The notes: generated by a model from the letters alone, not told the origin. Shown: positions 1,415 to 35,142, counted from the first letter of the stretch. The stretch is DNA of 64,000 bases from Rhodosorus marinus CCMP1338 (GCA_029953675.1 JAMWBK010000011.1:1054001-1118000), one strand, 5' to 3'. Numbers and translations: made by a program.

Positions 1415-4400
1415 CTAACTCAGCTCTGGATCAGTGAGCGCCCCGCTAAACTGCAGCAACGTGCAAAAGTCAACGAGACATTCGCTGTTTCCTACGTTGT
1501 ATAAGAGCACCTCGTTCGTGATTCCGGCGGCGTCAAAGACCATTTCCTTGTAGCCCCAGTCCCCATAGGGAATCGGAGTAACTGGCCCGAAGGAGTTCTT
1601 GCATAACCTGTTGTTCTGGTAGAGGATCTCCATGGTCAGCGGTCCCGATCCGCGGACATAGCACCGCATTCTGTACCGCTCGTCTCTGCTCAGCCACACA
1701 GTCTGACGAGCGACAGTCTCCGCGGGATAGAGGTACATAGCTCGCACGTTGCGCAGTGGCTGGACTGCGGAAAACTCAAGAGAACCGCTCACAGTCCATC
1801 GAAAATTCCTTTGGGGCTCAAAACTCGGGTTCTTCAGCTCCTGACCGGGCTCTAAAAGTACCGCTGGAGGATCCCATGTCGGGAAATCTGTTGCTAGGTT
1901 GTAAGCTCCCGAACCGACGTAAGGAGGGACCCCGTCAGTAGCGAGATAGAGTGAGCAGTCATCTACCCAGACGCCACCGCTCTGAGCTGCGGGATCACCG
2001 CCATCGTCTCGCTCCAGAACGATCTCATAGTCAGCTGAAAGAAGGATCTCAACGTCAACTTCCTGGTTCTTCCAGTCCGAGTTGTCCACATCGGACGTAT
2101 CTCCCAGATTCTCCGCATACATCGTCGAATCCCTCCAGATCGAAAGCCGGATGCTCCCCTTCACGTAGCAGTGCAATCTGTACACCTGGTTACGGCTCAA
2201 AGAGACGAGTTGTACTGCCTTTGAGCCCTCTTGTGTCAAGCTGAGAGCCTGCGTTCCACTGAAATTTTCAGATCTCGCCGTCTCGGCACCGTCAGAGAAA
2301 GCCCACACCCCAGCGTTCTCTTCGAAACTCGGGTCCGTCAAAAGTGAGTCGTACTCCGGATCCGTCTGTGCTCCCGAGAAAGGGAACAGGGTGCAAAAAT
2401 CGACCACGCACTCGCCGTCTCCGATGTTGTACAGAGATATATTCAGCGCTGCTTTCGTCGCATCAAAAATCACATCCTTGTATCCCCAATTGCCCCTCCC
2501 AATTATCGTCACCGCCCCGAACGAGTTCTTAGATATCCTCTCTCCCTGATAATTAACCTCCATGGTCAGTGACCCAGGTCCACGCACATAACACCTTAGC
2601 CTGTACCTCTCGTTCTGGTCCAAATACACCAACTGCGTTGCAACGGTGTTCGGGTAAACAAACATTGACCGCTCGCCTCTCAATGAGTCAACTACAGTGA
2701 ACTTGAGATCACCGTTCACAGTCCATCGAAAATTCCCCTGGGGCTCAAAACTCGGGTTCCTCAGCTCCTGACCTGACTCTAAAAGTACCGCTGGAGGATC
2801 CCATGTCGGGAGATCTGCTGGTAGGTTGTAAGCTCCCGAACCGACGTAAGGAGGGACCCCATCAGTAGCGAGATAGAGTGAGCAGTCATCTACCCATACG
2901 CCACCGCTCTGAGCTGCGGGATCACCACCATCGTCTCGCTCCAGAACGATCTCATAGTCAGCTGAGAAAAGGATCTCAAAGTCGACTTCCTGGCTCTTCC
3001 AGTCCGAGTTGTCCACATCGAATGTATCTCCCAGATTCTCCGCATACATCGTCGAATCCCTCCAGATCGAAAGCCGGATGCCTCCCTTCACGTAGCAGTG
3101 CAATCTGTACACCTGGTTACGGCTCAAAGAGACGAGTTGTACCGCCTTTGATCCGTCGCGCGTCAAGCTGAGAGCCTGCGTTACACTGAAACTTACAGAT
3201 GTTGCCAGCTCGGCACCGTCAGAGAGAGCCCACACCGCAGCGTCTTCTTCGAAGCTCGGGTCCCTCAAAAGTGAGTCGTACTCCGGATCCGTGAGTGGTC
3301 CCGAGTAAGGGAACAAAGTGCAAAAATCGACAACGCATTCGCTATCTCCGATGTTGTACAGAGATATATCCTGCGCTAGCTTCGTTGCATCATATATCAC
3401 ATCTTTGTATCCCCAGTCGCCTCTTCCGATCGGTGTCACCGCTCCGAACGAGTTCTTCGATATCCTCTCCCCTTGATGAGAAACCTCCATTGTCAACGAT
3501 CCAGGTCCCCGCACGTAACACCTTAGTCTGTACCTCACTTTCTGAGCTAAATATAACGACTGCGTTGCAACGGTGTTCGGGTAAACAAACATTGACCGTT
3601 GGTTCAGCAACGAGTCAATTGCGGTGAACTTGAGATCACCGCTCACAGTCCATCGAAAATTCCCTTGCGGCTCAAAACTCGGGTTCCCGAGCCCTTGACC
3701 TGACTCTAAAAGTACCGCTGGGGGATTCCATGTCGAGAGATCTGTTGGTAGGTTGTACGCACTGGACCCGACGTAAGGAGTGACCCCATCAGTAGCGAGA
3801 TAGAGTGAGCAGTCATCTACCCAGACGTCACCGCTCTGAGCTCCAGGCTCACCACCATCGTCTCGCTCCAGAACGATCTCGTAGTCAGCCGAGAGAAGGA
3901 TCTCAAAGTCGACTTCCTGGTTCTTCCAGTCCGAGTTGTTCACATTGAACGTATCTCTCAGATTGTCGGCATAGATTGTCGAATCACTCCAGATCGAAAG
4001 CCGGATGCCTCCCTTCACGTAGCAGTGCAGTCTGTACGCCTTGTTACGCCTCAAAGAGACGAGTTGTACTGCCTTTGACCCCTCCTGCGTCAAGCTGAGA
4101 GCCTGCGTTCCACTGAAACTTTCAGACGTCACCATCTCGGCACCGTCAGAGAGAGCCCATACCCCAGCGTCTTCTTCGAAGCTCGGGTCCGTCAAAAGTG
4201 AGTCGTACTCCGGATCCGTGAGTGGTCCCGAGAACCGGAACAAAGTGCAAAAATCGACAACGCACTCGCTATCTCCGATGTTATATAGAGATATATCCTG
4301 CGCTACCTTCGTCGCATCAAAAATTACATCTTTGTATCCCCAATCGCCTCTTTCGATCGGCGTCACCGCTCCGAACGAGTTTTTAGATATCCTCTCTCCC

Positions 4401-6990
4401 TGATGAGAAACCTCCATTGTCAACGATCCGGGTCCACGCACGTAACACCTTAACCTGTACCTCTCGTTCTGGTCCAAATACACCAACTGCGTTGCAACGG
4501 TGTTCGGGTAAACAAACATTGACCGTTGGTTCAGCAACGAGTCAATTGCGGTGAACTTGAGATCACCGCTCACAGTCCATCGAAAATTCCCTTGCGGCTC
4601 AAAACTCGGGTTCCCGAGCCCTTGACCTGACTCTAAAAGTACCGCTGGGGGATTCCATGTCGAGAGATCTGTTGGTAGGTTGTAAGCCCCGGAACCGACG
4701 TCAGGAGGGACCCCGTCAGTCGCCAGATAGAGTGAGCAGTCATCTACCCAGACGTCACCGCTCTGAGCTCCAGGCTCACCACCATCGTCTCGCTCTAGAA
4801 CGATCTCGTAGTCAGCCGACAGAAAGATCTCAAAGTCAACTTCCTGGTTCTCCCAGTCCGAGTTGTTCACATTGAACGTATCTCCCAGATTCTGCGCATA
4901 CATCGTCGAGTCACTCCAGATCGAAAGCCGGATGCCTCCCTTCACGTAGCAGTGCAATCTGTACGCCTTGTTACGCCTCAAAGAGACGAGTTGTACCGCC
5001 TTTGACCCCTCCTGCGTCAAGCTGAGAGCCTGCGTTCCACTGAAACTTTCAGACGTCACCATCTCGGCACCGTCAGAGAGAGCCCATACCCCAGCGTCTT
5101 CTTCGAAGCTCGGGTCCGTCAAAAGTGAGTCGTACTCCGGATCCGTGAGTGGTCCCGAGAACCGGAACAAAGTGCAAAAATCGACAACGCACTCGCTATC
5201 TCCGATGTTATATAGAGATATATCCTGCGCTACCTTCGTCGCATCAAAAATTACATCTTTGTATCCCCAATCGCCTCTTTCGATCGGCGTCACCGCTCCG
5301 AACGAGTTTTTAGATATCCTCTCTCCCTGATGAGAAACCTCCATTGTCAACGATCCGGGTCCACGCACGTAACACCTTAACCTGTACCTCTCGTTCTGGT
5401 CCAAATACACCAACTGCGTTGCAACGGTGTTCGGGTAAACAAACATTGACCGCTCGCCTATCAACGAGTCAACAACAGTGAACTTGAGATCACCGCTCAC
5501 AGTCCACCGGAAGTCGTATTGGTACTCAAAGCTTGGGTTCTTAATCTCCCCGTTGTCGCCAAGAAGTTCAACTGGCGGATCCCAAGGCGAAAGATCTGGT
5601 AGGTTGTAATCACCGGAGCCGACGTAAGGAGGGATGCCGTCAGCTGCTGCATAGAGGGAGCAGTCATCTGTCCAGACCCCATTCCTCTGGCGGCTCGGAA
5701 CACCCCCATTGTCTCGCACAAAGGTCAGCTCGTACTCGCCGGATTCTTCGATCATCACGTCGACTTCTTGATTGTTCCATTCGGAATTCGGTTCCGGAAA
5801 CGTGTCTCCAAAGTTCTCTGCGTACAAGATTGAATCCTTCCATAGCGTGAAGTGGATGTTCCCTGTTGAGTAGCAGTGCCACCTGTAGATATTTCCTCCG
5901 TCCAAATAGACGCGTTGAACGGCTGTTGATCCCTCCTGGGCGAGCCGGAGGCCCCGCACGCCCGTAAATGTTCTAAATCCCCGTATACTCGCGCCATTGG
6001 AGAACAACCACGGCTCGGTGCCTTGCTCGAAACTAGGATTTTGCACAAGTTGCTCGTTTTCAGGATCTGTGATCGGCCCCGAGTACTTGAACATGGTGCA
6101 GAAGTCAACGATGCATTCACTGTCCCCGTCGTTGTAGAGGAAAACATCCATCGCAATCTTCGGCGCGACGAAGACTACATCCTTGTACCCCCACGAACCA
6201 TATCCGATCGGCGTTACAGGACCAAATGCGTTCTTGGACACACGATCTCCTTGAAACGATACCTCCATGGTAAGCGATCCCGGCCCATTAACATAACAAC
6301 GTAATCTGTACGTATCTTCTAGGTCTAAGAAGACGGTCTGGTTTAGCACCGTGCCTGGGAAAACAACCATCGCCCGAGTTCCTTCCAAATTGTTTTGCCC
6401 GGTCAACTGTAGAGGGCCGGTGACACTCCATCGAAAGTCTGCGGTCGAAAATTCAAAGCTCGGGTTTCTAATAACTCCATCGTCGCCCAGAAGTTCCGCT
6501 GGTGGATCCCACGCAGGTATTGGCTCGGGAGGGTAGTTGACAGATGCCGAGCCGACGAAGGGTGGAACGTTGCCAGCAGCGTAAAGAGAACACTCATCTG
6601 CCCGAACCCCTGCGCTCTGGAGGCCTCGAGTACCACCATTGTCTCGCTCGATGACAATGTCGTATTCGCCCGAGCTGCGGATCAGAAAATCGAACTCTTG
6701 ATTCTTCCACCGGTTGTCTGGCCCTGGAAACGTGTTGCGGAGACTGTCACCGAAGATCGCCGAGTCATCCAATATCGAGAAGCGGATGCTCCCTCTCACG
6801 TAGCAGTGCAGCCTGTACACATTGTTTTCTCTGAGGTAGACGCGTTGAACGGCCTTGGCCCCTTCCTGACCGAGTCTGAGGCGATTAGCTCCCGTGAAAG
6901 CCTGGGCACTGCTCTGGAATTCGGCCCCGTCCAGCAAAGACCACGCTCCGTCTTGTTCTTCGAAGCTGGGGTCCTTCAAAAGCTGCTCTG
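1415..6990 (-). repeat. Intragenic tandem repeat, six ~927-bp (309-aa) A+B units
   Basis: Twelve PSFE-initiated modules alternate between type A (LHCYV..ERD.GG..DCSLY) and type B (FRW.V.G..LRCYV.GPG..DFCTLF..TDPE). Matching antisense ORFs recur at an exact 927-bp offset (4041/4968, 1951/2878). Confidence 0.95.
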
Positions 6991-9046
6991 CGTTGGGTGG
7001 AGACCTATACGGGTAGTCCTCAGGATTGGTTAGCGTTCCACACGGCAGACCTTCGTTTACCCCACCACCCAAGAGGCAGCACGCTCCCCCCACGCATTCA
7101 TCAACTTCCAAAACCACGCTGCTCAGCCAGCCGCCATCGTCAGAGTACTGCACCTTAATCTCCGGAGATGATCCCAGATCTTCCAGCCTGTAGGGAACGA
7201 CAAAAGTCCCAAAGTACCTGGCGTCATAGTTCCGCTTCGGACCAGCCATTCGCTCGTCATAGTCGGCAATCGGTTCTGCGGCATCGTTTACCCACACCTT
7301 GGGCTTGGCATCGTCGGAGAGCCTTCTGGAGTGTGAGATACGTATGTAACCAACGCCGTTCGGACTCTGTGGAACGCCGCTGAACTGAAACGTATAGGTC
7401 TCGTTCGCATCAACGGGCACGGGATATTCCCGAGTTTGTCCAGTACTGTCCAAGATCTCGCCCATGTAGTGCCTTGACCTCTCAACCTTGCGAAGTTCAC
7501 GTACAGGTGTAGTGAAGGTAACTGCCAGAACGTGCATCGCCTCCGGTTCGATCTGGACGCTTTCCGGAAGGGAACTAAGAGTCGAGTTGCTCCACCTGAC
7601 CGTTCCTGCTCGTGCGATACTCTGAGCTATGTCGTCCGCAGTCGGTTCGCCCTCCTCCAGCCAGAGTTTTCTTTCAACAACGCTCTCTACCACGCCAGAT
7701 CCGAATGGAAGGTTCAGATCGACCTGGGCCGCATCGCTTTCTGTGGCCAGGTTCTGAAGCAGAACGTAGGCGCGGTTCGAGTTCGCCACAGAGAGAACCT
7801 TGACGTATGGATCGTCGCTATAGGAGTACACAAAATCTCCTTCAACGCCTTTAAACAGCTCCAAGTAGTGCAGAAGCTCCGTCCACTCGAGCACGTCGTC
7901 TTTTCCTCCATCAGTAAGCGACCACGGATATGGATGGGTCAAGCCGTTCCGGCTATCCGTCGGATCCAAAGTTAGAAAGTTAATAAACTTGAGGACATTG
8001 TCGTGTACTCTTATTGTACTCATAAACGCCTTGAACGCGTCGGCCATAATGATAAAGTCCCTTCCACCAGTCGGCGGGAGAGATTCCCGGGTGTCCTTCG
8101 AGTGCCATGAGCCGTGATACGCACCGGTCTCAGTTATCATGTACTTGATGGGTTTACCATCATCAGATGTCTTCACCGTATAAGTCTCCAAAAGATCCAG
8201 ATTGGCGTCCTGGACGGCACCTCCCGATGAGTACGGATGTTGCGAGATGAAGTCGACACAGCCTGCACTGCGTGCAGAGTCGATAAAGTTCTTCATACGT
8301 GTCTGCCATCGACTAAAATTCTGAAGATGTGGTCTGCCGCTGTTTGCCCCTGGCCCTCCGGCGAGCATGTCAGGGTTTGCCGCTTTAATATCCCTACACA
8401 TTTGACCGCAAATGTTTCCGATCCTGCTGACCACCGAGTATTCGGACTCCTCTGGATATCGCTTGAACATCCTATACTCGCCCATCGGTTCATTGAAACA
8501 CTCCGAGTATCGTGGCTTTGGAAATCCCTCCTCAGCGTTGAAGAATCTGCTGAAGTACTCCCCGGAGAACGCGGCGGCATCGGAGATAAGTTGATCGCTG
8601 TGCTGGAACCTGAGTAACTGGTCTGCCCTGTCAGTAGCGACTCGCTCTTCGTCTATCATTCTCTTCCTGAGAGGGTCGCAGTTGGCGCATTTAATCTGGT
8701 TAAGTCTTAGTGCACCTTCCTCCTCGAGTCCGTCCACGCCGTCCGGGAAGCCCTGTGATCCTGAGAAAGGACCCTCATTCGACGACCTGGTAAACCGCAC
8801 GTCCAGGTCCATCGCGAGGTACTCCATCATAGCCCGCGCGTTCGTCGGCGACGCGAGGTTTCCATGAGCGTTAACGAATCGGTGTCGATCGAACACTTGC
8901 TCTCCGTTCGTTACCAAAGTCGTTCGGAAATCAACAGTCACAACCGCGCCCTTGATGCTCAGCACCAGCATCAATAACACCAGCACCACCTCGCTCGAAG
9001 CCATCGACCTCATCCTCGGAGTTATGGGACAGCCTGTCTTCCTCAT
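1415..9046 (-). CDS. Gene 1: secreted GH86-like (beta-porphyranase/agarase-type) glycoside hydrolase with 6 tandem A-B CBM-like module pairs, 2543 aa
   Basis: Uninterrupted 7.6-kb ORF. Hydrophobic signal peptide (start may be Met12 or Met15, the latter at 9004). GH-A motifs CFNEP (E186) and MITETG (E306). BpGH86A-like segments GGP..RP....[31 protein letters not shown]...SD.P.V, YFG.FVVP..L and DGG..SSVVLEV. Twelve (N/D)PSFE..W modules follow. Confidence 0.9.
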   Translation of the reverse strand: MRKTGCPITPRMRSMASSEVVLVLLMLVLSIKGAVVTVDFRTTLVTNGEQVFDRHRFVNAHGNLASPTNARAMMEYLAMDLDVRFTRSSNEGPFSGSQGFPDGVDGLEEEGALRLNQIKCANCDPLRKRMIDEERVATDRADQLLRFQHSDQLISDAAAFSGEYFSRFFNAEEGFPKPRYSECFNEPMGEYRMFKRYPEESEYSVVSRIGNICGQMCRDIKAANPDMLAGGPGANSGRPHLQNFSRWQTRMKNFIDSARSAGCVDFISQHPYSSGGAVQDANLDLLETYTVKTSDDGKPIKYMITETGAYHGSWHSKDTRESLPPTGGRDFIIMADAFKAFMSTIRVHDNVLKFINFLTLDPTDSRNGLTHPYPWSLTDGGKDDVLEWTELLHYLELFKGVEGDFVYSYSDDPYVKVLSVANSNRAYVLLQNLATESDAAQVDLNLPFGSGVVESVVERKLWLEEGEPTADDIAQSIARAGTVRWSNSTLSSLPESVQIEPEAMHVLAVTFTTPVRELRKVERSRHYMGEILDSTGQTREYPVPVDANETYTFQFSGVPQSPNGVGYIRISHSRRLSDDAKPKVWVNDAAEPIADYDERMAGPKRNYDARYFGTFVVPYRLEDLGSSPEIKVQYSDDGGWLSSVVLEVDECVGGACCLLGGGVNEGLPCGTLTNPEDYPYRSPPNAEQLLKDPSFEEQDGAWSLLDGAEFQSSAQAFTGANRLRLGQEGAKAVQRVYLRENNVYRLHCYVRGSIRFSILDDSAIFGDSLRNTFPGPDNRWKNQEFDFLIRSSGEYDIVIERDNGGTRGLQSAGVRADECSLYAAGNVPPFVGSASVNYPPEPIPAWDPPAELLGDDGVIRNPSFEFSTADFRWSVTGPLQLTGQNNLEGTRAMVVFPGTVLNQTVFLDLEDTYRLRCYVNGPGSLTMEVSFQGDRVSKNAFGPVTPIGYGSWGYKDVVFVAPKIAMDVFLYNDGDSECIVDFCTMFKYSGPITDPENEQLVQNPSFEQGTEPWLFSNGASIRGFRTFTGVRGLRLAQEGSTAVQRVYLDGGNIYRWHCYSTGNIHFTLWKDSILYAENFGDTFPEPNSEWNNQEVDVMIEESGEYELTFVRDNGGVPSRQRNGVWTDDCSLYAAADGIPPYVGSGDYNLPDLSPWDPPVELLGDNGEIKNPSFEYQYDFRWTVSGDLKFTVVDSLIGERSMFVYPNTVATQLVYLDQNERYRLRCYVRGPGSLTMEVSHQGERISKNSFGAVTPIERGDWGYKDVIFDATKVAQDISLYNIGDSECVVDFCTLFRFSGPLTDPEYDSLLTDPSFEEDAGVWALSDGAEMVTSESFSGTQALSLTQEGSKAVQLVSLRRNKAYRLHCYVKGGIRLSIWSDSTMYAQNLGDTFNVNNSDWENQEVDFEIFLSADYEIVLERDDGGEPGAQSGDVWVDDCSLYLATDGVPPDVGSGAYNLPTDLSTWNPPAVLLESGQGLGNPSFEPQGNFRWTVSGDLKFTAIDSLLNQRSMFVYPNTVATQLVYLDQNERYRLRCYVRGPGSLTMEVSHQGERISKNSFGAVTPIERGDWGYKDVIFDATKVAQDISLYNIGDSECVVDFCTLFRFSGPLTDPEYDSLLTDPSFEEDAGVWALSDGAEMVTSESFSGTQALSLTQEGSKAVQLVSLRRNKAYRLHCYVKGGIRLSIWSDSTIYADNLRDTFNVNNSDWKNQEVDFEILLSADYEIVLERDDGGEPGAQSGDVWVDDCSLYLATDGVTPYVGSSAYNLPTDLSTWNPPAVLLESGQGLGNPSFEPQGNFRWTVSGDLKFTAIDSLLNQRSMFVYPNTVATQSLYLAQKVRYRLRCYVRGPGSLTMEVSHQGERISKNSFGAVTPIGRGDWGYKDVIYDATKLAQDISLYNIGDSECVVDFCTLFPYSGPLTDPEYDSLLRDPSFEEDAAVWALSDGAELATSVSFSVTQALSLTRDGSKAVQLVSLSRNQVYRLHCYVKGGIRLSIWRDSTMYAENLGDTFDVDNSDWKSQEVDFEILFSADYEIVLERDDGGDPAAQSGGVWVDDCSLYLATDGVPPYVGSGAYNLPADLPTWDPPAVLLESGQELRNPSFEPQGNFRWTVNGDLKFTVVDSLRGERSMFVYPNTVATQLVYLDQNERYRLRCYVRGPGSLTMEVNYQGERISKNSFGAVTIIGRGNWGYKDVIFDATKAALNISLYNIGDGECVVDFCTLFPFSGAQTDPEYDSLLTDPSFEENAGVWAFSDGAETARSENFSGTQALSLTQEGSKAVQLVSLSRNQVYRLHCYVKGSIRLSIWRDSTMYAENLGDTSDVDNSDWKNQEVDVEILLSADYEIVLERDDGGDPAAQSGGVWVDDCSLYLATDGVPPYVGSGAYNLATDFPTWDPPAVLLEPGQELKNPSFEPQRNFRWTVSGSLEFSAVQPLRNVRAMYLYPAETVARQTVWLSRDERYRMRCYVRGSGPLTMEILYQNNRLCKNSFGPVTPIPYGDWGYKEMVFDAAGITNEVLLYNVGNSECLVDFCTLLQFSGALTDPELS

Positions 9047-14207: not shown

Positions 14208-17200
14208 CTACGTCGAAGACAGGTTAATGCTGTAAACACCACAGTCGTCTACGTGGGCGAAGTCATCACTTCGCGTTCTGATAATGAAAAGGAACTTCCC
14301 GTTACCTGGCGCCGTGAATTTTAGGTTTCTCTCCGTCCATTCTCCACTGGACGTCGGAGCCTCACGCTCACCCCTGACCACAAGCGTTTGACCTTTCTGT
14401 ATGTCCATGATCACAGGTGCGTTCCTCCATACCATGCACTGGAAGCGGTATTCAGTTCCGCTCAAAAGCTCAACCCTTTGGAACGCTCCGCTTACGTGTC
14501 TTCTCAACTTAACAGCTCCTGATCCACTTCGTACAATGCGACTCTGGAATATTGCGAGCCCGAAAAGGGTCCAGTGCGTCTCAGATTTAGATTCGAAGCT
14601 TCCATCCGAGAGCAGCTGCACAACAGGCTCCAATGTGGGCTCAGGCGTGGGCACAGGCGTGGGCTCAGGCGTGGGTTCAGGTGTCGGTTCAGGCGTGGGT
14701 TCAGGCGTGGGTTCAGGCGTGGGTTCAGGCGTGGGTTCAGGCGTGGGTTCAGGCGTGGGTTCAGGCGTGGGTTCAGGCGTGGGTTCAGGCGTGGGTTCAG
14801 GCGTGGGTTCAGGCGTGGGTTCAGGCGTGGGTTCAGGCGTGGGTTCTGGCGTGGGTTCAGGCGTGGGTTCAGGTGAGGGCTCAGGTGTCGGCTCAGGTGT
14901 CGGCTCAGGTGTCGGCTCAGGTGTCGGCTCAGGTGTCGGCTCAGGTGTCGGCTCAGGTGTCGGCTCAGGTGTCGGCTCAGGTGTCGGCCCAGGTGTCGGC
15001 TCAGGTGTCGGCTCAGGTGTCGGCTCAGGTGTCGGCTCAGGTGTCGGCTCAGGTGTCGGCTCAGGTGTCGGCTCAGGTGTCGGCTCAGGTGTCGGCTCAG
15101 GTGTCGGCTCAAGTGTCGGTTCAGGTGTCAGCTCAGGTGTTGGTTCAGGTGTCGGCTCCGGAGTGGGTTCTGGCGTCGGCTCTAGTGTCGGTTCCGGCGT
15201 GGGTTCTGGCGTCGGCTCTGGTGTCGGCTCAGGCGTGGGCTCAGGCGTGGGATCAGGGGTGGGCTCAGGCGTGGGCTCAGGCGTGGGTTCAGGTGTCGGT
15301 TCTGGCGTCGGCTCTGGCGTCGGCTCTGGCGTCGGCTCTGGCGTCGGTTCTGGCGTGGGTTCCTGCGTGGGTTCAGGCGTGGGTTCAGGCGTGGGCTCAG
15401 GTGTCGGCTCCGGCGTCGGCTCCTGCGTGGGCTCTGGCGTAATCTCCGGTGTCGGTTCAGGCGTAGGCGCAGACGTCGGCTCCAGTGTCGGTTCAGGCGT
15501 AGGCACAGGCGTCGGTTCAGGCGTAGGCACAGGCGTCGGCTCTGGTGTCGGCTCCGGCGTCGGTTCAGGCGTCGGTTCAAGCGTCGGTTCAGGCGTCGGT
15601 TCAGGCGTAGTCACAGGCGTCGGTTCAGGCGTAGGCACAGGCGTCGGCTCTGGTGTCGGCTCCGGCGTCGGTTCAGGCGTCGGTTCAAGCGTCGGTTCAG
15701 GCGTCGGTTCAGCCGTAGGCACAGGCGTCGGTTCAGGCGTAGGCACAGGCGTCGGCTCTGGTGTCGGCTCCGGCGTCGGTTCAGGCGTCGGTTCAAGCGT
15801 CGGTTCAGGTGTCGGTTCAGGCGTCGGTTCAAGCGTCGGTTCAGGTGTCGGCTCCGGCGTCGGGTCAGGCGTCGGTTCAGGCGTGGGGTCAGCCGTTGGC
15901 TTAGACGTTGGCTCTGGTGTCGGTTCAGGCGTATTGTCGGAAAGCTCCGGATCCGTTAGAGATCCCGAAAAATTGAACAACGTGCAAAAATCGACTATAC
16001 AGTCCCGTTTTCCGATGTTGTAAAGACGAATCTCCTGCGCGATTCCTCCGGCGTCAAACACCATATCCTTGAATCCCCATGAGTCCCGCTCAATTCCCAC
16101 AACCGGGCCATAGGAGTTCTTGGATAGCCTGTTGCCCTTGAAAGTAACTTCCATTGTCAGGGATCCCGGTCCGGATACATAGCATCGCAACCTATACCTC
16201 TCTCCTTTGTTTAAGTAGACAGTCTGATATGCGACGGTACTCGATGCACGGATGTACAGCGCTCGGGAACCATCCAACACATTCAGCGATGTTAGCTCCT
16301 TCGGGCCGCCACTGAAGGCCCACTGAAATTCGTTGTGCGGCGAGAAGCTCGGATTTCTAGTTTCTCCTTTGCCCTGAAGTTCCGCTGGTGGATCCCACGG
16401 AGGTAGCTCCGGCGGGTAGGCGAAGGACTCGGAACCAGCATAGGTTCGCCCTTCTGGAGCAGGATAGAGGGAGCACCCATCCGCCCAGACTTCCGCACTC
16501 TGCGATTCTGGGTTGCCAAAGTTGTCGCGCTCCAAGACGATCTCATACTCACGCGACTCGCGAATTACGAAATCAGCTTCTTGGCTCTCCCAAACCGTGC
16601 CGGGCAAACCAAACGTGTCGGCACGGTTATCTCCGAACAACGTTGAATCGGCCCATACTGAGAAACGAATGCTCCCCCTGACGTAGCAATGTAGTCGATA
16701 AGCCACATTCCTCTCCAAGAACAAGCTCTGAACGGCTTTGGATCCTTCTTGACCAAATCTGAGCCGTCGATTTCCACTGAAACTCGCCGCTGTCTGCATA
16801 TCGGCGCCGTTGGAAAGGGACCAAGCGCCTTGAGCTTCTTCAAAATCTGCGTTTTCCAAAAGCTGCTCAGGCTCCGGATCGGTTCTGGGTCCATCAAATA
16901 GAAACACTGTGCAAAAGTCCACGACAACCTCACTTTCTCCACTGTTATACAGGTACAATTCCTGCGAGATTGCAGACGCGTCAAAGACCATATCCTTGAA
17001 TCCCCATTGAGCCCGTTCAATTGGCACCACAGGATCAAACATGTTCCTAGATACCCTCCTACCCCTAAACCGAACTTCCATTGTCAACGACCCGCTTCCA
17101 GTAACGTAGCATCTCCACCTGTATCTCTTCCCCTTCTCCAAGAAGATCATCTGGCTTGCTACAGTCCTCGCGGGGTAGACTAGCAAGGCTCGCGAACCAT

Positions 17201-20200
17201 ACAGTACGTCGAGCGCGCTAAAATTCAGAGGCTCGTCAGCGTCCCACTTTAAGTCTTTCTGGTATTTGAAACTCGGGTTCTTCACCTCCTGGTCCTCACC
17301 CATAAGCTCAGCTGGTGGTTCCCACGTTGGGAGCACTGGGGGAAATTCGTAGGAATCAGATCCGGCAGTGGGTGGGACACCGTCGAAAGCAACGTAGAGC
17401 GAGCACTCATCTACACGTACGCCAGAGCTCTGGAGCTCGGGATTTCCCGCGTTATCACGTTCAAGGACAATATCATAGTCGCCGCTCGTGGGTATGAAGA
17501 AGTCAATCTCCTGGCTCTTCCACCCCGAGCTTTGAACATCCAAGACATCTCCGTGGTTATTCCCGTACAGTGTCGACCGCCTCCACACCGAGAAGCGGAT
17601 ACTTCCGGTGACATAGCAGTGTAATCGGTAGTTAGAGTCCTTCTCCAAGTAGACTTGTTGGGTCGCCTTCGAGCCTTCCTGATTGAATTTCAACACGCGA
17701 CTGCCTGCGAAACTCTGAAAACTCTGGGTCAACGCTGCACCAGTAGACAGCGACCACGACTCGGTGTCCTCTTCAAAGCCTGGGTTTCCCAAGATCTGGT
17801 CCAGCTCAGGATCCGTCAGCGGTCCGTCAAACAGGAACATGGTACAGAAGTCGACAAGGCATTCGGTGTCCCCTATGTTGTAGAGGGACACCTCCTGCGT
17901 CACTCCCACCGCGTCGAACACTATCTCTTTGTACCCCCATTGACCCCTCGATGTCGAGAAGACAGGTCCGAATGAGTTTCTAGATACTAGTTTTCCCCGG
18001 AAATCAATCTGCATACTCAACGGTCCTGTTCCAGAAACATAGCACCGCATCCTATACCTTTCACCTTTCTCCAAGAAGACATTCTGCTTTGCGAAAGTGC
18101 TCATTGGATAGATCCACATCGCCCGAGAGCCTTCTAGAGCTTTCAGTCCATCAAATTGCAAACGTCCGGTGACAATCCATCGAAAGTCCGTCCGCCTCTC
18201 AAAGCTCGGATTTCGAATCTCTCCATCCTCGCCCAGAAGCTCGGGGGGGGGATCCCACCGAGGCGACTCTGGTGGGTAGTTGACGTACTCTGATCCAACG
18301 TAGCTTGGAACGTTGGGAGCAGCATATACGGAGCACTCATCCGCCCAGACGCCCGAGCTCTGGAGCATCGGGTTACCCTGGTTGTCTCGCTCAAAAGTAA
18401 TCTCGTACTCACCGTCATCCCGAATCAGGAAATCGATCTCTTGATTGTACCAGAACGAACTCAGCACCGGGAACGTATCGCCAAGGTTCTCACCAAAAAG
18501 AGTTGAGTCTGCCCATATAGAAAATCGGATGCTCCCAATCACATGGCAGTGCAATCTGTACACATTGTTTCCCCTCAAATATACCCTCTGAACGGCCTTG
18601 GACCCCTCCACTTTAAACTGGAGAGCTTGGTCTCCTGTGAAACTGTTGTGATTTCGAATCTCGATCTCGTCTGATAACAGCCACCGCCCGGCCTCATCCT
18701 CGAACCCGGCATTTTTCAACAGCTGCTCCGCATTGGGTGTCCTCCTCCTCGGGTAGTCCTGAGGGTTTGTTGTACTTCCACACGGTAGATCGTCGTTTGT
18801 GCCTCCGCCCAAAAGGCAACAGGCTCCGCCGTCACATTCGTCAACCTCCAAGACGACGCTGCTCAGCCATCCTCCATTATCAGAGTACTGCACCTTAATC
18901 TTCGGAGCGCTTCCTAGGCTCTCTACTGAATACGGAATGACAAACACTCCAAAGTATTTATCGCCATAGGGCCTCTTCGGTCCAGCCATTCTCTGATCAT
19001 AGTCCTCAATTGGCTGCTTCGCGTCGTTAACCCACACCTTGGGCTTGTCGTCTCCGCTAGGCTTTCTAGAGTGTCCGATACGAATGTATCCGACTCCATG
19101 CAGACTTTGCGGAATTTCTTTGAACGAAAACGTGTAGATCTCGTCCGTCTCAATGAGCACCGGAAGCTCCAGAGGTCGGTTGGTGCTATCAACAACCTCG
19201 GTCATGTAGTGCCTAGATCGCTGCACCTTTCGGAGCTCAACCACGGGTCGATAGAAGTTGAAGGCCAGCACGTGCATTGACTCTGGCTCTATCTGAATAC
19301 TTTCCGGAACGGAGAACATCGTCGAATTGCCCCACTTGACGTGTCCTGCTCGTTTGAGATTCTGGGCAGTGTCTTCCTCCGTCAGCTCTCTTTCCTGCAA
19401 CCATATCTTCCTTTCAACAACGTTCGTCACAGTGCCAGGTCCGAATGGAAAGCCCAGCTTCACCTCCGCCGGTTCGCCTTCCGTTGCAAAATTCTGTAGG
19501 AGTATGTATGCGCGATTGGAGTTGGCAATGGCGTGAACCTTAATAAATGGGTCGTCACTGTAGGAGTATGCAAGGTCTCCTTCGACGCCCTTGAACAGTT
19601 CTAAATAGTACAAGAGCGGCGTCCACTTGACGTCGTCCTCGGTCCCGCCCTCAGAAAGCGACCACGGATATCGATATTCCTTGCCGTTCCGGTCGTCCCC
19701 GGGATCCAGAGTCAGAAAATTAACAAACTTGAGGAGGTTGTCATGGACTCTAAGTGTACTCATAAACGCCTTGAACGCTTCAGACATAATAATAAAGTCT
19801 CTGCCTCCCCGCGGGGGTGCGGATATCTCGGTGCTCTTCCGGAACCAGGACATGTCATACGCCCCGGTCTCCGTTATCATGTATTTGATCGGCTTACCAT
19901 CGTCAGATATGTGACTGCTGTAGGTCTCCAGAAGATCTAGATTCGCATCTTGGACCGCACCTCCGGACGAGTAAATGTGCTCTGAAATGAAATCCAGGCA
20001 TCCTGCACTCCGCGCGGAGTCGATGAAGTTCTTCATACGCGTTCGCCATCGAGCAAAATCTTTCAGATGCGGCCTAGCACTGTTTGCCCCTGGACCTCCT
20101 GCGAGCATGTCCGGGTGGGCTGCGTTGACCTGCGTGCACATCTGGCCGCAGATGCTTCCGATCCTGGAAACCACAGACTCTTCTGTCTCCGTCGGAAATC

Positions 20201-24062: not shown

Positions 24063-26996
24063 TTATGCTCGCCAGACTGAGCAGTAGTCGATGACACATG
24101 GTTTACTACCCGTCGCCTCAACTGTAAAGTTGTGTTGCGTTCCGATGGAGTTGAACGTCACTTGCCTGAACCCCCATTTGCCTCGACCAATCGTTTCCAC
24201 TCGTTCGCCCTCGCTTTCACTGACCCGCGTACCCAGTCTCACCACGGACATAGAGAGCCGACAAGATTCCGCCATGTAACAACGAAATCGGTAGGTCCTG
24301 CCCTTGATAAGTCCCACCTTTTGTCTCGCTCGAGATCCTGAATATAACTCCAGCGATCTGTAGTCGTGGAGAGCATTATCGGCTCTAAAACGATAGCCTC
24401 TGTCAATCTTCCACCCGAACGTTCTCTCACTGCGTTGCTCCTCAAAGCTCGGATTGACAAACAGCTGTCCCCTTTCGACTATTCCTGGCGGGTACCACCG
24501 GGGCAGTTTCGCGGGTGGGCTGACTTTCTCAGGCCCAATTCCTGATGGAATCTGATCAGACCTGTGAAGTGTACAGAGGTGTACCATCACGCCTCCATTT
24601 TGCAAACTTGGATTTCCACCATTGTCCCTGTTCAGTCGCACTTCGTAGAATCCCTTCTGTTCGATGCGGAAGTCAAGTTGCATCTGCCTCCACTGCGTGT
24701 TGGGCACTACCGAGGACCGGCCAAAATTAGCCCCGTAGAAGGTGTCTCCAGTCCGTATGATCATATGAATCCGTCCTTTCATGAAACAGTGGAGTCTGTA
24801 GACGCTGTTTTCCCTCAAGTACACATCCTGATACGCACCCGAAGACTCGGCGTTCATCTCGAGCGCGTAGTCTCCGTATAAGAGATTCGGCATCTTCGTG
24901 TAGGATGTCCGACCAAAGCGCTTCCACGCACTGTTTTCCAAGGGCAGGAATGGTGGGTTCTTCAGGAGTTGCTCGCCATACGGGAACCTCCGGCGTCGAG
25001 ATACTGTACTTGAAGTCGTGCCGACACATCTAAAGGATTTGCCGCGGCCACCGAGTACACAGCATGATCGGCTGTCGCATCGATCAACCTCCAATGTAAC
25101 TGTACTGATCCATCCTCCGTCGTCCGGGTACTGTAGCGATACTTTGGGTCTCCCGACGCTGGTAAGCTGCCCCAGATCGAACGGAACGACAATGACGCCA
25201 AAGTACTTGTCGCCATAGTCTCGCTTAGGACCCGCCATTCGAGAGCTGAAGTTTGTCACTTGCTTGTCGTTAATCCAGACTTTAGGCTTAGCCACACTCG
25301 TCGGTCTCCTCGAGTGCGCTATTCTGATGTACGCCAAGCCATCTCTCCCCTGTGGGATATCTTCGAAAAACACGTTGTACTTCTCACCTCCGTCGATCTC
25401 GAACGGATATGAGTTGATAGTCCTTCCCTTGTTCGTCACATTGTCCATGTAGTGCCTGGTCCGCCGGACTGAGCCCCGCTCAACCAGCATTCTTGACAAC
25501 CTCAGCTCTAGCACTGTCATCGCACCTGCCTTGAGCTCCACCGTTTTCGGAATGGCGTTCAAAGTGGCGTTGGTCCACCTCAGATCTCCGCCTCGAAGGA
25601 GGTTTTGACTTCTATCTGCAGCCGTGAGTTTCCTTTGGTTCAGGTACAGCCTTCTGTGAACAACGCTCTCCACTGGAGGTTTTCCTCGAGGGAAACTAAG
25701 ATCCACATTAACCGAGCCGCTTGTTGCGAAATTTTGAAGCAACACATACGCCTTGAAAGCGTTTCCAACAGCATGTACTTTCACGTTTGCGTCGTCCGAA
25801 TACGAGTACACAAAGTCACCCTGCACCCCTTTGAGCAGCTCAAAGTAGTTGATCAACGGAGTCCACTTGACCTTGGCGTTTTCTCCATACCCTTCGACCA
25901 GAGCCCACGGGTAGCGGTGCCTTCCAGAGGCCTGCCGGCTGATCGGATCCAAAGTCAGGAAGTTTACATACTTGAGGAGATTATCGTGCGTCCTCAGCGA
26001 GCTCATGAATCCCCCAAAAGCATCCGAAAGGATCTTAAAATCTCTACCTCCCAATGGTGGTGCCGAGTAGATCCCACCGTTGTCGTCGTACCAAGTTTTG
26101 TCGTAGTCTCCGGATTCGGTGACCATGTATGGAAGGATCTTCTTGCGGCCGCTGGTCTTGTAAGTGTACGTCTCAATGAGGTCGAGATTAGCATCCTGAA
26201 CTGCACCACCAGAGCCGTAGAGATGCTCGGAGATGAAGTTGATGCACCCGGCCCGGCGTGCGCTGTCCAAAAAAGTCTTCATTCGTTTCCTGAAGTTGTC
26301 GAAGTTGCTGAGATGGGGTCTGGCACTGGATGCTGCTGGACCTCCAGCCATAACTTCCGGGTTTGACCTTGTGATCGCGGTGCACATTCTTCCGCAGATG
26401 TTCCCGATTCGGCTCACGACGGACTCCTCGCTCTCCGTGTTTGAGGTGCGGAACGACTTCCACTTTACCATCGGCTCGTTGAAGCACTCGGCGTACCGCG
26501 GCTTCGGGTATCCTCTATTTTCGTCGAAGAAGTACCTGAAGAAATCTGCCGCGAAGTTTGCGCCAGCATTGATCTTGGCGTTGCTTCCCTGCACAAGGTT
26601 CAACCTCTGGGCAATGTCGACCACAACCCGTTCCTCCGTTATCATCCTCTTCCGAAGTGGATCGCACCAGTCACAGTCAACCTTGTCGATGTTCTTCTGG
26701 CCTTCCGAACGGACCTGACCTGTCCTGCTGGGGAAAATCTTCTGCGATAGCGGACCGTTGTTCGATCTCCCGAAAAACACTCCGAGCTCCTCCACGATGT
26801 ACTCCATCAATGCTCTCGCGTTTGCGGGCGCCTGAAAATCTCCATGAGCGTTGACAAAACGCTCCCTATCGAACTGACGCTTTCCATTGGTGTACAGGGT
26901 ACTCCCGAAATCCAAGTTAACTTTGGCACAGTCCGAAGCCCTGAAAAGAACCAGGGCCAAGACGGCAACAGCCCCCCAGCTCCTCAACCCAAGCAT
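24063..26996 (-). CDS. Gene 3: secreted GH86-like hydrolase with one A-B module pair, 977 aa
   Basis: ATG start, signal peptide, CFNEP and MVTESG, DANLDLIETY, Cys linker C-x4-CC, modules A (NPPF..W) and B (NPSFE). Confidence 0.9.
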   Translation of the reverse strand: MLGLRSWGAVAVLALVLFRASDCAKVNLDFGSTLYTNGKRQFDRERFVNAHGDFQAPANARALMEYIVEELGVFFGRSNNGPLSQKIFPSRTGQVRSEGQKNIDKVDCDWCDPLRKRMITEERVVVDIAQRLNLVQGSNAKINAGANFAADFFRYFFDENRGYPKPRYAECFNEPMVKWKSFRTSNTESEESVVSRIGNICGRMCTAITRSNPEVMAGGPAASSARPHLSNFDNFRKRMKTFLDSARRAGCINFISEHLYGSGGAVQDANLDLIETYTYKTSGRKKILPYMVTESGDYDKTWYDDNGGIYSAPPLGGRDFKILSDAFGGFMSSLRTHDNLLKYVNFLTLDPISRQASGRHRYPWALVEGYGENAKVKWTPLINYFELLKGVQGDFVYSYSDDANVKVHAVGNAFKAYVLLQNFATSGSVNVDLSFPRGKPPVESVVHRRLYLNQRKLTAADRSQNLLRGGDLRWTNATLNAIPKTVELKAGAMTVLELRLSRMLVERGSVRRTRHYMDNVTNKGRTINSYPFEIDGGEKYNVFFEDIPQGRDGLAYIRIAHSRRPTSVAKPKVWINDKQVTNFSSRMAGPKRDYGDKYFGVIVVPFDLGQLTSVGRPKVSLQYPDDGGWISTVTLEVDRCDSRSCCVLGGRGKSFRCVGTTSSTVSRRRRFPYGEQLLKNPPFLPLENSAWKRFGRTSYTKMPNLLYGDYALEMNAESSGAYQDVYLRENSVYRLHCFMKGRIHMIIRTGDTFYGANFGRSSVVPNTQWRQMQLDFRIEQKGFYEVRLNRDNGGNPSLQNGGVMVHLCTLHRSDQIPSGIGPEKVSPPAKLPRWYPPGIVERGQLFVNPSFEEQRSERTFGWKIDRGYRFRADNALHDYRSLELYSGSRARQKVGLIKGRTYRFRCYMAESCRLSMSVVRLGTRVSESEGERVETIGRGKWGFRQVTFNSIGTQHNFTVEATGSKPCVIDYCSVWRA

Positions 26997-32193: not shown

Positions 32194-35142
32194 TCAGATC
32201 GCCTTGTATAATGTGCAGTAGTCGATAATAGTTGGTGTGGCTCCGTTTGCTACAGCGGTGAAGTTGTGCTGCGTTCCAATCGCCTTGAACGTAACCTGTT
32301 TGTACCCCCAGTTGCCATATCCGATGCTCTGAACGTGCTCGTCATTATTCTCAGCGACCAAAGTATCCAACCTCACCACCGAGAGCCCAAGTGAACCCTC
32401 TTCAGTCAAGTAGCACCGGAAGTTGTAGTCCACCCCCTTGACGAGCTTCACTTTCTGCGTAACTATAGACCCGGACTCCAGTTCCAGGGCTCGGTGGTCG
32501 TGGAGTGGCATATCAGCTCTGAAACGGTGGCTCTGCTCAATTGTCCATCCGAACTTGTTTGCGCTCGTTGCCTCCTCAAAGCTCGGATTGATGAACTTCT
32601 CGCTCCCTCCGCTGGGCCTCGGCGGAGGTGTCCAGAGGGTCCTTTCCCGGGGAGGCTTGAACCCATCCGTTCCAATGGATCGCGGGACATTATCAGACCG
32701 GTGAATCGTACAGAGGTGAAGAAACACGCCGTTGTCCTGAACTGTCGGTTCTCCGTTATCGTCCCTCTCCAGTCTCACAGTGTAGAATCCAGCCTTTTCG
32801 ATGCGGAAGTCAAGCTCCGTGCTTCTCCACACAGTGTTCGGCACCGGTTGGGAGTTCCCATTCTTCGCCGCGTAGAAGGTTTGCCCGGACTCAATGATCA
32901 TATTAATCCGACCTCTGAGGAAGCAGTGAAGTCGGTACATACTACCCTCCCTCAAATAGACCGTCTGAGTAACACCCGCACCCTCGTTTTTCAGCTGCAG
33001 AGCACGATCTCCGTATAAGAGGACTGGGGAGTAGACGTTCCTGGTACCGCCGTAGGGTTTCCAAGCAGACGCGCCCTCTCTCCGATCAAATTCTGGATTC
33101 ACTATGATTTGCTCTCCGGACGGAACGTCCCTCCTTCTCGCCAAGACGTTTGCAATCCCAGATGAGCACTTGATATTCTCATCACGACCGCCCAGCAGGC
33201 AGCAGGATCGGCCATCGCACTGGTCGATCTCCAGGACGACGGTGCTGATCCACCCTCCCTCATCAGGGTACTGCAAAGTGACCTTGGGCTTGGAGACAGC
33301 TGTGAGCTTTTCCAGAGGGTACGGAATCACGAACGTGCCAAAGTACTTGTCGCCGTAGTCCCTCATTGGACTCCCCATCTTGGCACTGTATTCGGTCACG
33401 ATCTCGTCGTTGATCCATACGGTAGGTTTCTCGACCAAGTGCGGTTTCCTCGAGTGAGAAATCCTGACGTACGCCATCCCGTTCACACCCGTTGGAATGC
33501 GCCGAAAGTACACGTCGTAGGATTTCCCTGCCTGGATCGCGAAGGGTATCTCTTCAATTTTTTCGCCAAGGCTGGCGACACGATAACTGTAGTGTCTCGT
33601 TCTCTCCACAGCCCCACGCTCGATCACCATCTTCGTCATCTTGAACTCCAACACCGTCATGTCGCCGGCCATCATCTCAATGCTCTTCGGAACCGCCTCC
33701 AAGGTCTCGTTGCTCCACCTTAGTTTGCCCGCGCGCGTAAGACCTTGTGCCTTGTCTGCTGGATATAGGGTTCTCTCGTCGAGCGAAAGCTTTCTGTAGA
33801 CCACCTCCTCAACTTTGGGCGTTCCACGCGGGAATTTGAGCTCCACCGTCGTCGACCCGCTGGTGGCAAAGTTCTGAAGCAATACGTAGCCCTTGAAAGC
33901 ATCCGCAACGGCGTGGACCTTCACGAAGGCATCGTCGGAATAGGAATAGGTAAATTCGCCCTGGACACCCTTGAGAAGCTCAAAGTAGTCGATCAGAGGC
34001 GTCCACTTGACTTTGGCATCGTGTCCATACCCTTCCGTCAACGACCATGGGTATCGATGCTCTCCAGACGCCTGCCTGCTGATCGGGTCCAGCGTGAGGA
34101 AGTTGACGTACTTGAGGAGGTTATCGTGAGTCCTCAGGGAGCTCATAAGCCCTCCAAACGCGTCTGAGAGAATTTTGAAGTCTCTTCCTCCTCGCGGTGG
34201 TGCCGAGTAGACTCCGTTGGTGTCGTTGTACCAGGTCTTGTGGTAGGCTCCGGCCTCGGTGACCATGTAGGGAAGGACCTCCCTCTTACGACCGCTGGTT
34301 TGGTACGTATAGGTCTCCATGAGGTCGAGGTTGGCATCCTGGATAGCACCTCCGGAGTTGTAGATGTGCTCTGATAGAAAGTTGACGCACCCAGCCTCTT
34401 TCGCGCTCTCCAGATACGCTCTCTGTCGAATTCTGAACATGTCAAAGTTTCTCAGATGTGGTGTCCCGTTCGATGCCGACGGTCCTCCAGCCATAACCTC
34501 TGGGTTGGTCTCGGTGATTGCGCTGCAGAACCTTCCACAGATGTTTCCAACTCGTCGCACAACAGATTCCTCCGTCTCCTGGTTGTTGCGGCGCAGCGAC
34601 TTCCACTTGACCATGGGCTCGTTGAAGCACTCTGCGTAGCGAGGCTTTGGGAGACCCTTCGACTCGTCGAAGAAGTACTGGAAATAATCGGCCGCGAAGC
34701 TCGCTCCGAGCTCAATCTTTTCCTCGCTGTTGTGCACAAGCTTGATCTTGTCGGCAACATCGACCACCACTCGCTCGCGAGTGATCATTCTCTTCCGAAG
34801 CTCATCACAACCACGATCGCACACAACCGATTCCACGTTCTTGGCGCCCTCCTCGACAACCTTCTTGACGTTGTAGGGGAATATCTTCTCCGAGATTGGA
34901 CCATCGTTGGATCTTCCGAAATGTACCCCAAGTTCTTCAACGAGATATTCCATCAAATGGATGGCGTTTTTTGGTGCCTTAAAGTCCCCATGGGCGTTGA
35001 CGAATCGCTGCCTACTAAAATCCCGCTTCCCATTCGTATTCAACGTGCTCGAAAAGTCAACCGTAACTTTCACACCGAGTGTAGCCCTGCACAACAGCAG
35101 AGCTACAATGACATACACTCTCCAGTTCGTAAAGTAAGACAT
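32194..35142 (-). CDS. Gene 4: secreted GH86-like hydrolase with one A-B module pair, 982 aa
   Basis: ATG start, signal peptide, CFNEP and MVTEAG. Most similar to gene 3 (shared SRQASG.HRYPW and VQN(G/A)FATSGS-type segments). Confidence 0.9.
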   Translation of the reverse strand: MSYFTNWRVYVIVALLLCRATLGVKVTVDFSSTLNTNGKRDFSRQRFVNAHGDFKAPKNAIHLMEYLVEELGVHFGRSNDGPISEKIFPYNVKKVVEEGAKNVESVVCDRGCDELRKRMITRERVVVDVADKIKLVHNSEEKIELGASFAADYFQYFFDESKGLPKPRYAECFNEPMVKWKSLRRNNQETEESVVRRVGNICGRFCSAITETNPEVMAGGPSASNGTPHLRNFDMFRIRQRAYLESAKEAGCVNFLSEHIYNSGGAIQDANLDLMETYTYQTSGRKREVLPYMVTEAGAYHKTWYNDTNGVYSAPPRGGRDFKILSDAFGGLMSSLRTHDNLLKYVNFLTLDPISRQASGEHRYPWSLTEGYGHDAKVKWTPLIDYFELLKGVQGEFTYSYSDDAFVKVHAVADAFKGYVLLQNFATSGSTTVELKFPRGTPKVEEVVYRKLSLDERTLYPADKAQGLTRAGKLRWSNETLEAVPKSIEMMAGDMTVLEFKMTKMVIERGAVERTRHYSYRVASLGEKIEEIPFAIQAGKSYDVYFRRIPTGVNGMAYVRISHSRKPHLVEKPTVWINDEIVTEYSAKMGSPMRDYGDKYFGTFVIPYPLEKLTAVSKPKVTLQYPDEGGWISTVVLEIDQCDGRSCCLLGGRDENIKCSSGIANVLARRRDVPSGEQIIVNPEFDRREGASAWKPYGGTRNVYSPVLLYGDRALQLKNEGAGVTQTVYLREGSMYRLHCFLRGRINMIIESGQTFYAAKNGNSQPVPNTVWRSTELDFRIEKAGFYTVRLERDDNGEPTVQDNGVFLHLCTIHRSDNVPRSIGTDGFKPPRERTLWTPPPRPSGGSEKFINPSFEEATSANKFGWTIEQSHRFRADMPLHDHRALELESGSIVTQKVKLVKGVDYNFRCYLTEEGSLGLSVVRLDTLVAENNDEHVQSIGYGNWGYKQVTFKAIGTQHNFTAVANGATPTIIDYCTLYKAI

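Follow-up and report, generated by a model that had tools for sequence, protein, structure and literature searches.

An alternating two-module tail of a carbohydrate-binding fold on a GH86-like gene array of the red alga Rhodosorus marinus

Glycoside hydrolase family 86 (GH86) is a family of bacterial beta-agarases and beta-porphyranases, and its enzymes, together with their carbohydrate-binding modules (CBMs), are known as the tools with which marine and gut bacteria consume red-algal walls. The bacterial enzymes of known structure share two glutamate motifs and a catalytic architecture of three parts, in which a (beta/alpha)8 barrel precedes a pair of beta-sandwich domains. Here we describe a stretch of 64,000 nucleotides of nuclear DNA from the unicellular red alga Rhodosorus marinus CCMP1338 (GCA_029953675.1 JAMWBK010000011.1:1054001-1118000; hereafter the window), in which eight single-exon GH86-like genes stand in tandem, all on the minus strand, between positions 1415 and 63406. 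They have the same architecture and both motifs and differ from the bacterial enzymes in being eukaryotic, intronless, arrayed and only 22–27% identical in sequence. Behind the catalytic region each gene carries a tail built from two module types, A and B, which are the main subject of this study.

Among described modules, the closest to those of the tail are the CBM16 members of PF02018 (CBM16-1 of Caldanaerobius/Thermoanaerobacterium ManA, structures 2ZEX, 2ZEY, and 3OEB, and the module 8XMZ). They have the same beta-jelly-roll of ~135–145 residues, an N-terminal N-P-(S/G)-F-E...W strand and a W-x-Y-K...F strand (GxWGYKDVxF in B, DWTYKQLLF in CBM16-1), they are likewise attached to polysaccharide-degrading enzymes, and they provide the best single-domain structural matches to A, with template modelling (TM) scores of 0.60–0.69. 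They differ in that the similarity is non-significant in sequence (E 0.3–0.8), that A has an RDxGGxPxxQ loop, and that the host here is a eukaryote. For the working of the tail, the best analogy may be the tandem CBM22-1/CBM22-2 of Xyn10C from Paenibacillus barcinonensis (4XUP), along with other heterotypic tandem CBMs of bacterial glycanases; in Xyn10C, too, a glycoside hydrolase bears, side by side, two copies of one CBM_4_9-superfamily fold that have diverged from each other, and a model of the A-B pair matches it with an E-value of 5e-11. Since the TM-score of that match is only 0.32, only one domain superposes and the orientation differs. Xyn10C also has a single pair, whereas the Rhodosorus tail has up to six, in strict alternation and with a conserved Trp-containing linker. 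Closer to hand, other module arrays of the same organism (proteins P0007, P0014, and P0023/P0024) have the same fold signature and Cys pair but show no A/B differentiation (hidden Markov model, HMM, scores for the two types are close, e.g., 66 vs. 44), ordinary Pro/Thr-rich linkers, and no alternation. What is new, then, is a typed, strictly alternating, putatively disulfide-bearing pair on a eukaryotic GH86 array; the domain class was already known.

A GH86-like gene array with an alternating tail

From their sequences, the eight genes are predicted to encode secreted GH86-family glycoside hydrolases of the agarase/porphyranase type. In window coordinates they are:

1415-9046, minus strand, gene 1: one unbroken open reading frame (ORF) of 2543 aa in a single exon, which starts with a signal peptide and continues with the GH86-like catalytic region and a tail of (A-B)x6
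14208-20780, minus strand, gene 2: three A-B pairs, a PEPT linker, and a third-type C-terminal module
24063-26996, minus strand, gene 3: one A-B pair at 24066..24974
32194-35142, minus strand, gene 4: one A-B pair at 32197..33114
39342-42311, minus strand, gene 5: one A-B pair at 39345..40286
47528-49999, minus strand, gene 6: A only, 47531..47974, without the RDxGG loop
53462-55933, minus strand, gene 7: A only, 53465..53908, without the RDxGG loop
60446-63406, minus strand, gene 8: one A-B pair at 60449..61381

The tail of gene 1 comprises twelve modules, each opening N/D-P-S-F-E, which start at residues 692, 861, 1003, 1170, 1311, 1479, 1620, 1788, 1929, 2097, 2238, and 2406. The six resulting A-B pairs fill positions 1418-6988 with a period of 927 nt, A measuring ~168 aa including a linker of ~35 aa and B ~141 aa. 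Type-specific HMMs separated A from B without overlap (160–250 bits for a module's own type, at E 1e-49 to 1e-77, vs. 28–54 bits for the other type), and the order was always A then B; the arrangements AA, BB, and B alone were absent both from the window and from the Rhodosorus transcript orthologs. This separation and constant order bear out the first-pass annotation of this DNA, which had proposed an A-then-B alternation of two distinct module types. Its list of pair counts along the array (6, 3, 1, 1, 1, 0.5, 0.5, 1) is exact, the two values of 0.5 being the A-only genes 6 and 7. The Cys pairs that it quoted are present (YRLHC...DxCSLY in A, YRLRCY...VDFCTL in B), as is the B motif KNxFGPVxPI..GxWGYK; the loop given for A, ERDxGGxPxxQSxGV, is found in A with the exception of genes 6 and 7, which lack RDxGG. 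The main parts of genes 1 and 2 are:

6989..9046, minus strand, gene 1 GH86-like region: ~686 residues, a TIM barrel with the glutamate motifs ECFNEP and ITETG, then two beta-sandwich domains (PF18206, PF18040)
6482..6988, minus strand, gene 1 module A1 with its A-to-B linker (delimited by motif cut)
6056..6481, minus strand, gene 1 module B1 (delimited by motif cut)
5555..6055, minus strand, gene 1 module A2: an old copy, with a synonymous divergence (dS) of 1.3 to A3
1847..5554, minus strand, gene 1 amplified block B2-A3-B3-A4-B4-A5-B5-A6: four 927-nt units in B-A phase
1418..1846, minus strand, gene 1 module B6: an old copy (dS about 2 to B5), ending ...TDPELS
15945..18728, minus strand, gene 2 three A-B pairs (delimited by motif cut)
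14625..15944, minus strand, gene 2 Pro/Glu/Thr-rich linker: ~430 aa, with ~108 copies of a 12-nt tandem repeat at 14638-15932
14211..14624, minus strand, gene 2 C-terminal third-type module: residues 2053-2190, with the same fold signature and Cys pair

The third-type module scored 17.4 bits with PF02018, 44.8 with the B-HMM, and 37.1 with the A-HMM. A 540-aa antisense ORF at 14401-16023, made of GSGV repeats, is a by-product of the 12-nt repeat of gene 2.

The GH86 assignment is carried by the catalytic region. Both PF18206 and PF18040 matched in all five proteins scanned, and sequence matches in the PDB, namely BuGH86 (5TA1, E 5e-18), BpGH86A (4AW7), and the beta-agarase 8H97, cover residues ~145–640, so that the barrel and both beta-sandwich domains of GH86 are represented. 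All eight genes retain both glutamate motifs, FNE(P/V) for the acid/base and (I/V)(T/S)E for the nucleophile. Alignment to BuGH86 sets FNEP opposite INEP and TESG opposite ISE; the nucleophile of BuGH86 is E322 in that paper's own numbering (PMC5849685). Gene 1 begins with a hydrophobic, signal-like segment, and its N-terminal region is also present in the seven other same-strand ORFs. Among paralogs, identity in the catalytic region is 42–68%, except for genes 6 and 7, at 96%.

The nearest bacterial GH86 proteins come mostly from marine Bacteroidota, with some from Planctomycetota and Verrucomicrobiota. Since an A/B-like module was found in none of 79 bacterial GH86 loci, including 3-kb flanks, no sampled bacterium was the source from which the tail came along with the catalytic domain. 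Gene 3 and the catalytic-domain alignment, used as queries in word-indexed protein searches, returned, among the matches listed, only Rhodosorus and one bacterial protein, a result that says nothing on other eukaryotes. None of the papers searched connects Rhodosorus, or the nuclear genome of any red alga, with GH86 or porphyranase, and no report of a eukaryotic GH86 was found.

Homology, fold, and lineage-specific features of the modules

Compared directly with hhalign, A and B are homologous with 99.3% probability (E 1.6e-20), and both cysteines fall in aligned columns. In a joint tree the A modules form one clade (support 100/98), and the B modules all fall to one side of a less well supported branch (78/81). 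Genes 3/4, 6/7, and 1/2 pair up within A and within B alike; two clades with matching gene grouping in each indicate that the A/B split is older than the gene family.

When whole proteins were searched with PF02018 (CBM_4_9; curated gathering score 25.9 bits), gene 1 scored 82.8 bits over five stretches and gene 2 scored 44.2 bits, in both cases only through summed B-type stretches, while a B-like module of another Rhodosorus GH86 protein (P0014) passed singly at 40.8 bits. A profile of the A-B pair, searched against 1.84 billion representative proteins, gave 189 matches at E ≤ 1e-3. Of the 18 at E ≤ 1e-14, those traced were from Rhodosorus, three were untraced, and four were long, multi-module, bacterial-type proteins, two of these occurring only in metagenome or read-archive assemblies. 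The few weaker matches examined were long bacterial-type proteins in which the matched stretches coincide with strong PF02018 domains, with host totals of 83–154 bits. Homology to bona fide PF02018 members can thus be traced via the bacterial matches, with A tied in through B by hhalign. Among the matches traced, the typed A and B modules appear from sequence to be restricted to Rhodosorus.

AlphaFold modelled A as an all-beta sandwich with a predicted local distance difference test (pLDDT) of 81 and a predicted TM-score (pTM) of 0.79, and the A-B pair (311 residues) as all-beta with pLDDT 85 and pTM 0.74. In Foldseek searches the A and A-B models matched structures of CBM16, CBM61, CBM4, CBM22, and CBM6 with a probability of 1.00, consistent with the beta-jelly-roll fold. 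The top single-domain match of A was the porphyran-binding CBM 8XMZ (TM 0.69, root-mean-square deviation 4.1), followed by the CBM16 structures 2ZEY, 2ZEX, and 3OEA (TM 0.60–0.65), CBM61, CBM4, and an agarose-binding CBM6, so that the closest structural neighbors of A are CBM16. 8XMZ is probably the porphyran-binding CBM16 described by Mei et al. 2024, which PMC11678492 cites. It was absent from the sequence matches of the A and B profiles at E ≤ 10. With the A-B model, the CBM22 tandem of 4XUP ranked at the top together with CBM-like domains from insecticidal protoxins. The N-terminal half of the A profile also matched residues 3–83 of 4Q8K_A, an alginate lyase chain, at E 8.8e-6.

Modelled structure and homology together point to A and B as anciently diverged paralogs of one beta-jelly-roll domain of the CBM4/9/16/22 superfamily, nearest to CBM16 by predicted structure. 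Within that superfamily, which was already known, they form divergent branches specific to this lineage, and they represent neither a new fold nor a new domain class. Most of what the first-pass annotation had read into the modules therefore stands: a CBM4/9-like, galactose-binding-type beta-sandwich (now seen in the PF02018 score of gene 1, the AlphaFold models, and the Foldseek matches to CBM16, CBM61, CBM4, and CBM22), two distinct conserved types with a homologous Cys pair, and a copy number that varies between paralogs. Its proposal of an unclassified CBM family is not supported in that form, given that A and B are mutually homologous, that their profile retrieves bona fide bacterial PF02018 domains, and that the fold is not new. 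The Pfam search of isolated modules that it had suggested gave none above threshold, and the placement rests instead on summed scores, transitive homology, and fold.

Several features set the Rhodosorus modules apart. The Cys pair, YRxxC...vDxC, occurs in A, in B, in the C-terminal module of gene 2, and in nearly all aligned modules of other Rhodosorus proteins, and is missing from all three bacterial relatives aligned. Both cysteines lie within predicted strands, and it is plausible that they form a disulfide specific to Rhodosorus. A alone, compared with every other module, has a 5–7-residue insertion, RDxGGxPxxQ, just before the last strand, and B is marked by an additional Cys (SEC) and by the stretch KNxFG...GxWGYK. 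In the A-to-B linker of ~35 aa, G146, W160, and P162 are invariant and P142 and P163 nearly so, in paralogs that are only 30–40% identical. The other Cys-pair proteins of Rhodosorus carry untyped modules and comprise P0007 (KAJ8901447.1), P0014, and P0021–P0024; P0007 has a partial GH86 match and six homotypic modules, P0014 a GH86 domain and three or more modules, and P0023/P0024 are trypsin-like S1 peptidases with C-terminal Cys-pair modules.

Copy-number history and the A-only genes

The ratio of nonsynonymous to synonymous substitution (dN/dS, by Nei-Gojobori) was 0.13–0.43 for every module pair tested, which places all modules under purifying selection. Between strains the modules are 76–92% identical and the catalytic region 84–90%. 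Within gene 1, A-B units share 73–94% of their protein and 72–94% of their nucleotide sequence, and neighboring copies differ greatly in age: dS is 1.3 for A2/A3 vs. 0.15 for B2/B3, and 0.135 for A5/A6 vs. 2.07 for B5/B6. Because B2/B3 and A5/A6 are young and A2/A3 and B5/B6 are old, and because the trees agree, the recent expansion of gene 1 was that of the block from B2 to A6, in B-A phase. An ortholog from another strain (P0003, 82% identical to gene 1) has the layout A1B1-A2B2-A3B3 and ends as gene 1 does; of the gene 1 modules, B6 is the nearest to the ortholog's B3, and A3–A6 are all equally close to its A3. This layout and these affinities indicate that three pairs are ancestral, as in gene 2. 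In gene 1, one B-A-phased 927-nt unit became four copies, and three pairs became six.

The duplication that gave A and B preceded the gene family, and in the mechanism that we propose the array has since grown and shrunk only by in-register unequal crossing-over with the 927-nt period. As the exchange is in register, alternation would be preserved whatever the phase of the crossing-over. Since such crossing-over suffices to maintain it, alternation alone is no evidence for an A-B functional unit.

The half copies of genes 6 and 7 each consist of A followed by a decayed, frameshifted B with stops:

53078..53464, minus strand, gene 7 pseudo-B downstream of the stop: spread over three frames and matching B-HMM positions 26–94 (32.6 bits, E 5e-9)
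47360..47527, minus strand, gene 6 B remnant downstream of the stop: linker/NP-F start and TDPE end kept, with an internal deletion of ~289 nt relative to gene 7

The readable pieces of the gene 7 pseudo-B are WDPP, NPDFKPQ, YQRVFLGKGRKYRSRCY, and TDPE. An A-only ortholog transcript of another strain likewise ends ...VQASR and is 80% identical in A and 89% in the catalytic region; because it ends at the same residues, the A-only form is old, expressed, and conserved. B is dispensable in this one lineage. Genes 6 and 7 themselves lie within a recent segmental duplication of ~5.93 kb that includes intergenic DNA (window 44500-57400). The two copies are 95% identical at 47496/53430 and 51076/57003, and their catalytic regions, 96% identical, have a dS of 0.054.

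Role of the tail and competing explanations

We consider it fairly probable that the tail anchors the enzymes, in multivalent fashion, to a sulfated galactan of the alga itself that stays bound to the cell. The A/B tail would bind this matrix and keep the catalytic domain at or close to the polymer that is its substrate. Two shapes of binding site would be available, one from A and one from B, with the RDxGGxPxxQ insertion setting A apart, and more pairs would bring higher avidity and longer reach, both of which the PEPT spacer of gene 2 may also set. Indirect support comes from the fold class of the modules, from their nearest relatives, and from their position on a glycoside hydrolase. In species of Stylonematophyceae other than Rhodosorus, the polysaccharide is reported to be cell-bound and highly sulfated, and Fourier-transform infrared spectra give a hint of anhydrogalactose (PMC9031348). 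Related Cys-pair modules are also found on Rhodosorus S1 peptidases and on other GH86 proteins, and their presence on peptidases argues for a general matrix anchor.

Several observations weigh against this picture of a carbohydrate-binding tail whose length is tuned by pair number. With PF02018, single A modules gave no match at E ≤ 1 and single B modules scored 12–17 bits, below threshold. The structural TM-scores are moderate (0.5–0.7), and in searches of PDB sequences with the A and B profiles the CBM16-1 entries (2ZEW/2ZEX/2ZEY/3OEA/3OEB) were non-significant, at E 0.34–0.84. The same fold class serves non-carbohydrate roles elsewhere, and CBM-like domains of protoxins are among the best two-domain matches. 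Our literature search found no characterization of the matrix polysaccharide of Rhodosorus itself. Finally, the count of three pairs in the other-strain ortholog rests on a transcript assembly, in which repeats that are nearly identical may be merged.

A possible, if doubtful, alternative is a stronger version of the first-pass proposal that the A-B pair is the functional binding unit: each pair would fold as a rigid body of two lobes whose binding site is composite, neither half being useful alone. It would account for the conservation of the A-to-B linker, whose G146, W160, and P162 are invariant despite the low identity of the paralogs, where the homotypic arrays of P0007 use ordinary Pro/Thr-rich linkers instead. 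The pTM of the A-B model exceeds what we would expect of two freely hinged domains, B-only, AA, and BB arrangements were not seen, and the A modules without a B partner also lack the A-specific loop. Loss of the loop and loss of B are, however, one evolutionary event (n = 1), and the A-only genes 6 and 7 are intact and duplicated, with dN/dS of 0.25–0.29 and 87% identity to an other-strain transcript with the same end. Moreover, the recent amplification unit of gene 1 is B-A rather than A-B, the pLDDT of the linker is only 64–72, and the alignment behind the A-B model is shallow (12 paralogs). In a wider form of this alternative, which we regard as rather unlikely, A-B would be an obligate two-lobed unit deserving its own CAZy CBM number(s) and would read the repeat motif of an uncharacterized agar-/porphyran-like sulfated galactan of Stylonematophyceae; the array would be the first eukaryotic GH86 system and serve endogenous wall remodelling, with reach and avidity set by a fast-evolving A-B copy number (3 vs. 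6 between strains).

It is improbable that the tail binds no carbohydrate and is instead a structural stalk or spacer, or a module for protein-protein contact or self-association that packs the enzymes in the matrix. Among the best two-domain structural matches there are indeed reelin repeats as well as CBM-like domains from Vip3-type proteins and insecticidal protoxins, proteins in which the fold is used for packing or for contact with a receptor. The repeats also give weak MAM and filamin-like noise in Pfam, and the same module family is carried by peptidases, whose substrates are not glycans. A matrix anchor would, however, account equally well for modules on peptidases, and attachment to a glycoside hydrolase is the classical context of a CBM. 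Outside Rhodosorus, the closest relatives by sequence are PF02018 domains in multi-CBM proteins of bacteria, some of which also bear glycan-active modules such as a GH141-type insertion domain or a dockerin, and the top single-domain matches by structure are CBMs for galactans, mannans, and porphyran with their ligands bound.

Long tandem repeats of 84–94% nucleotide identity are hard to assemble, and the ortholog transcript shows only three pairs, but an artefact of assembly or annotation behind the repeat count and alternation is very improbable and was rejected, as was chance: the ORF is unbroken across 7.6 kb, the copies differ (dS 0.13–0.44) and form a coherent tree, the alternation recurs independently in eight genes and in other-strain transcripts, and the published assembly is long-read and chromosome-level (PMC10250338).

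On the reading of the tail as a matrix anchor, the significance of the array lies in the biology of the system, i.e., red-microalgal walls and CBM multivalency, and not in a new domain class, because the fold is not new. A red alga itself encodes an expanded family of GH86 proteins, predicted to be secreted, with lineage-specific modules of a carbohydrate-binding fold. If these modules bind the alga's matrix, this would suggest that the alga remodels a galactan of its own, similar to agar or porphyran, in a class about whose wall chemistry very little is known. A, B, and A-B would then be ready probes for that polymer, and the natural series A, AB, (AB)3, (AB)6, and (AB)3 with a long linker and a further module would allow valency and heterotypy to be related to avidity.

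The R. marinus genome has a mean of about three introns per gene (PMC10250338), with which the intron-free GH86-like array contrasts; the array could stem from an old horizontal transfer or from ancient inheritance. The intergenic spacers hold short ORFs without any Pfam match. Four public proteins, P0010 (248 aa), P0008 (335 aa), P0013 (176 aa), and P0009 (336 aa), are 100% identical only to C-terminal pieces of genes 4, 5, 7, and 8, and because they cover no more than these pieces the deposited models of the four genes seem truncated. The full-length ORFs are backed by transcripts of 977, 980, and 823 aa from other strains, and gene 3 is 85–89% identical to R. marinus transcripts across its full 977 residues. 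In gene 5 the mechanically called ORF starts at a GTG (42291-42311), and translation in a eukaryote would more probably begin at the ATG that follows seven codons later (…MMGGMYGW…).

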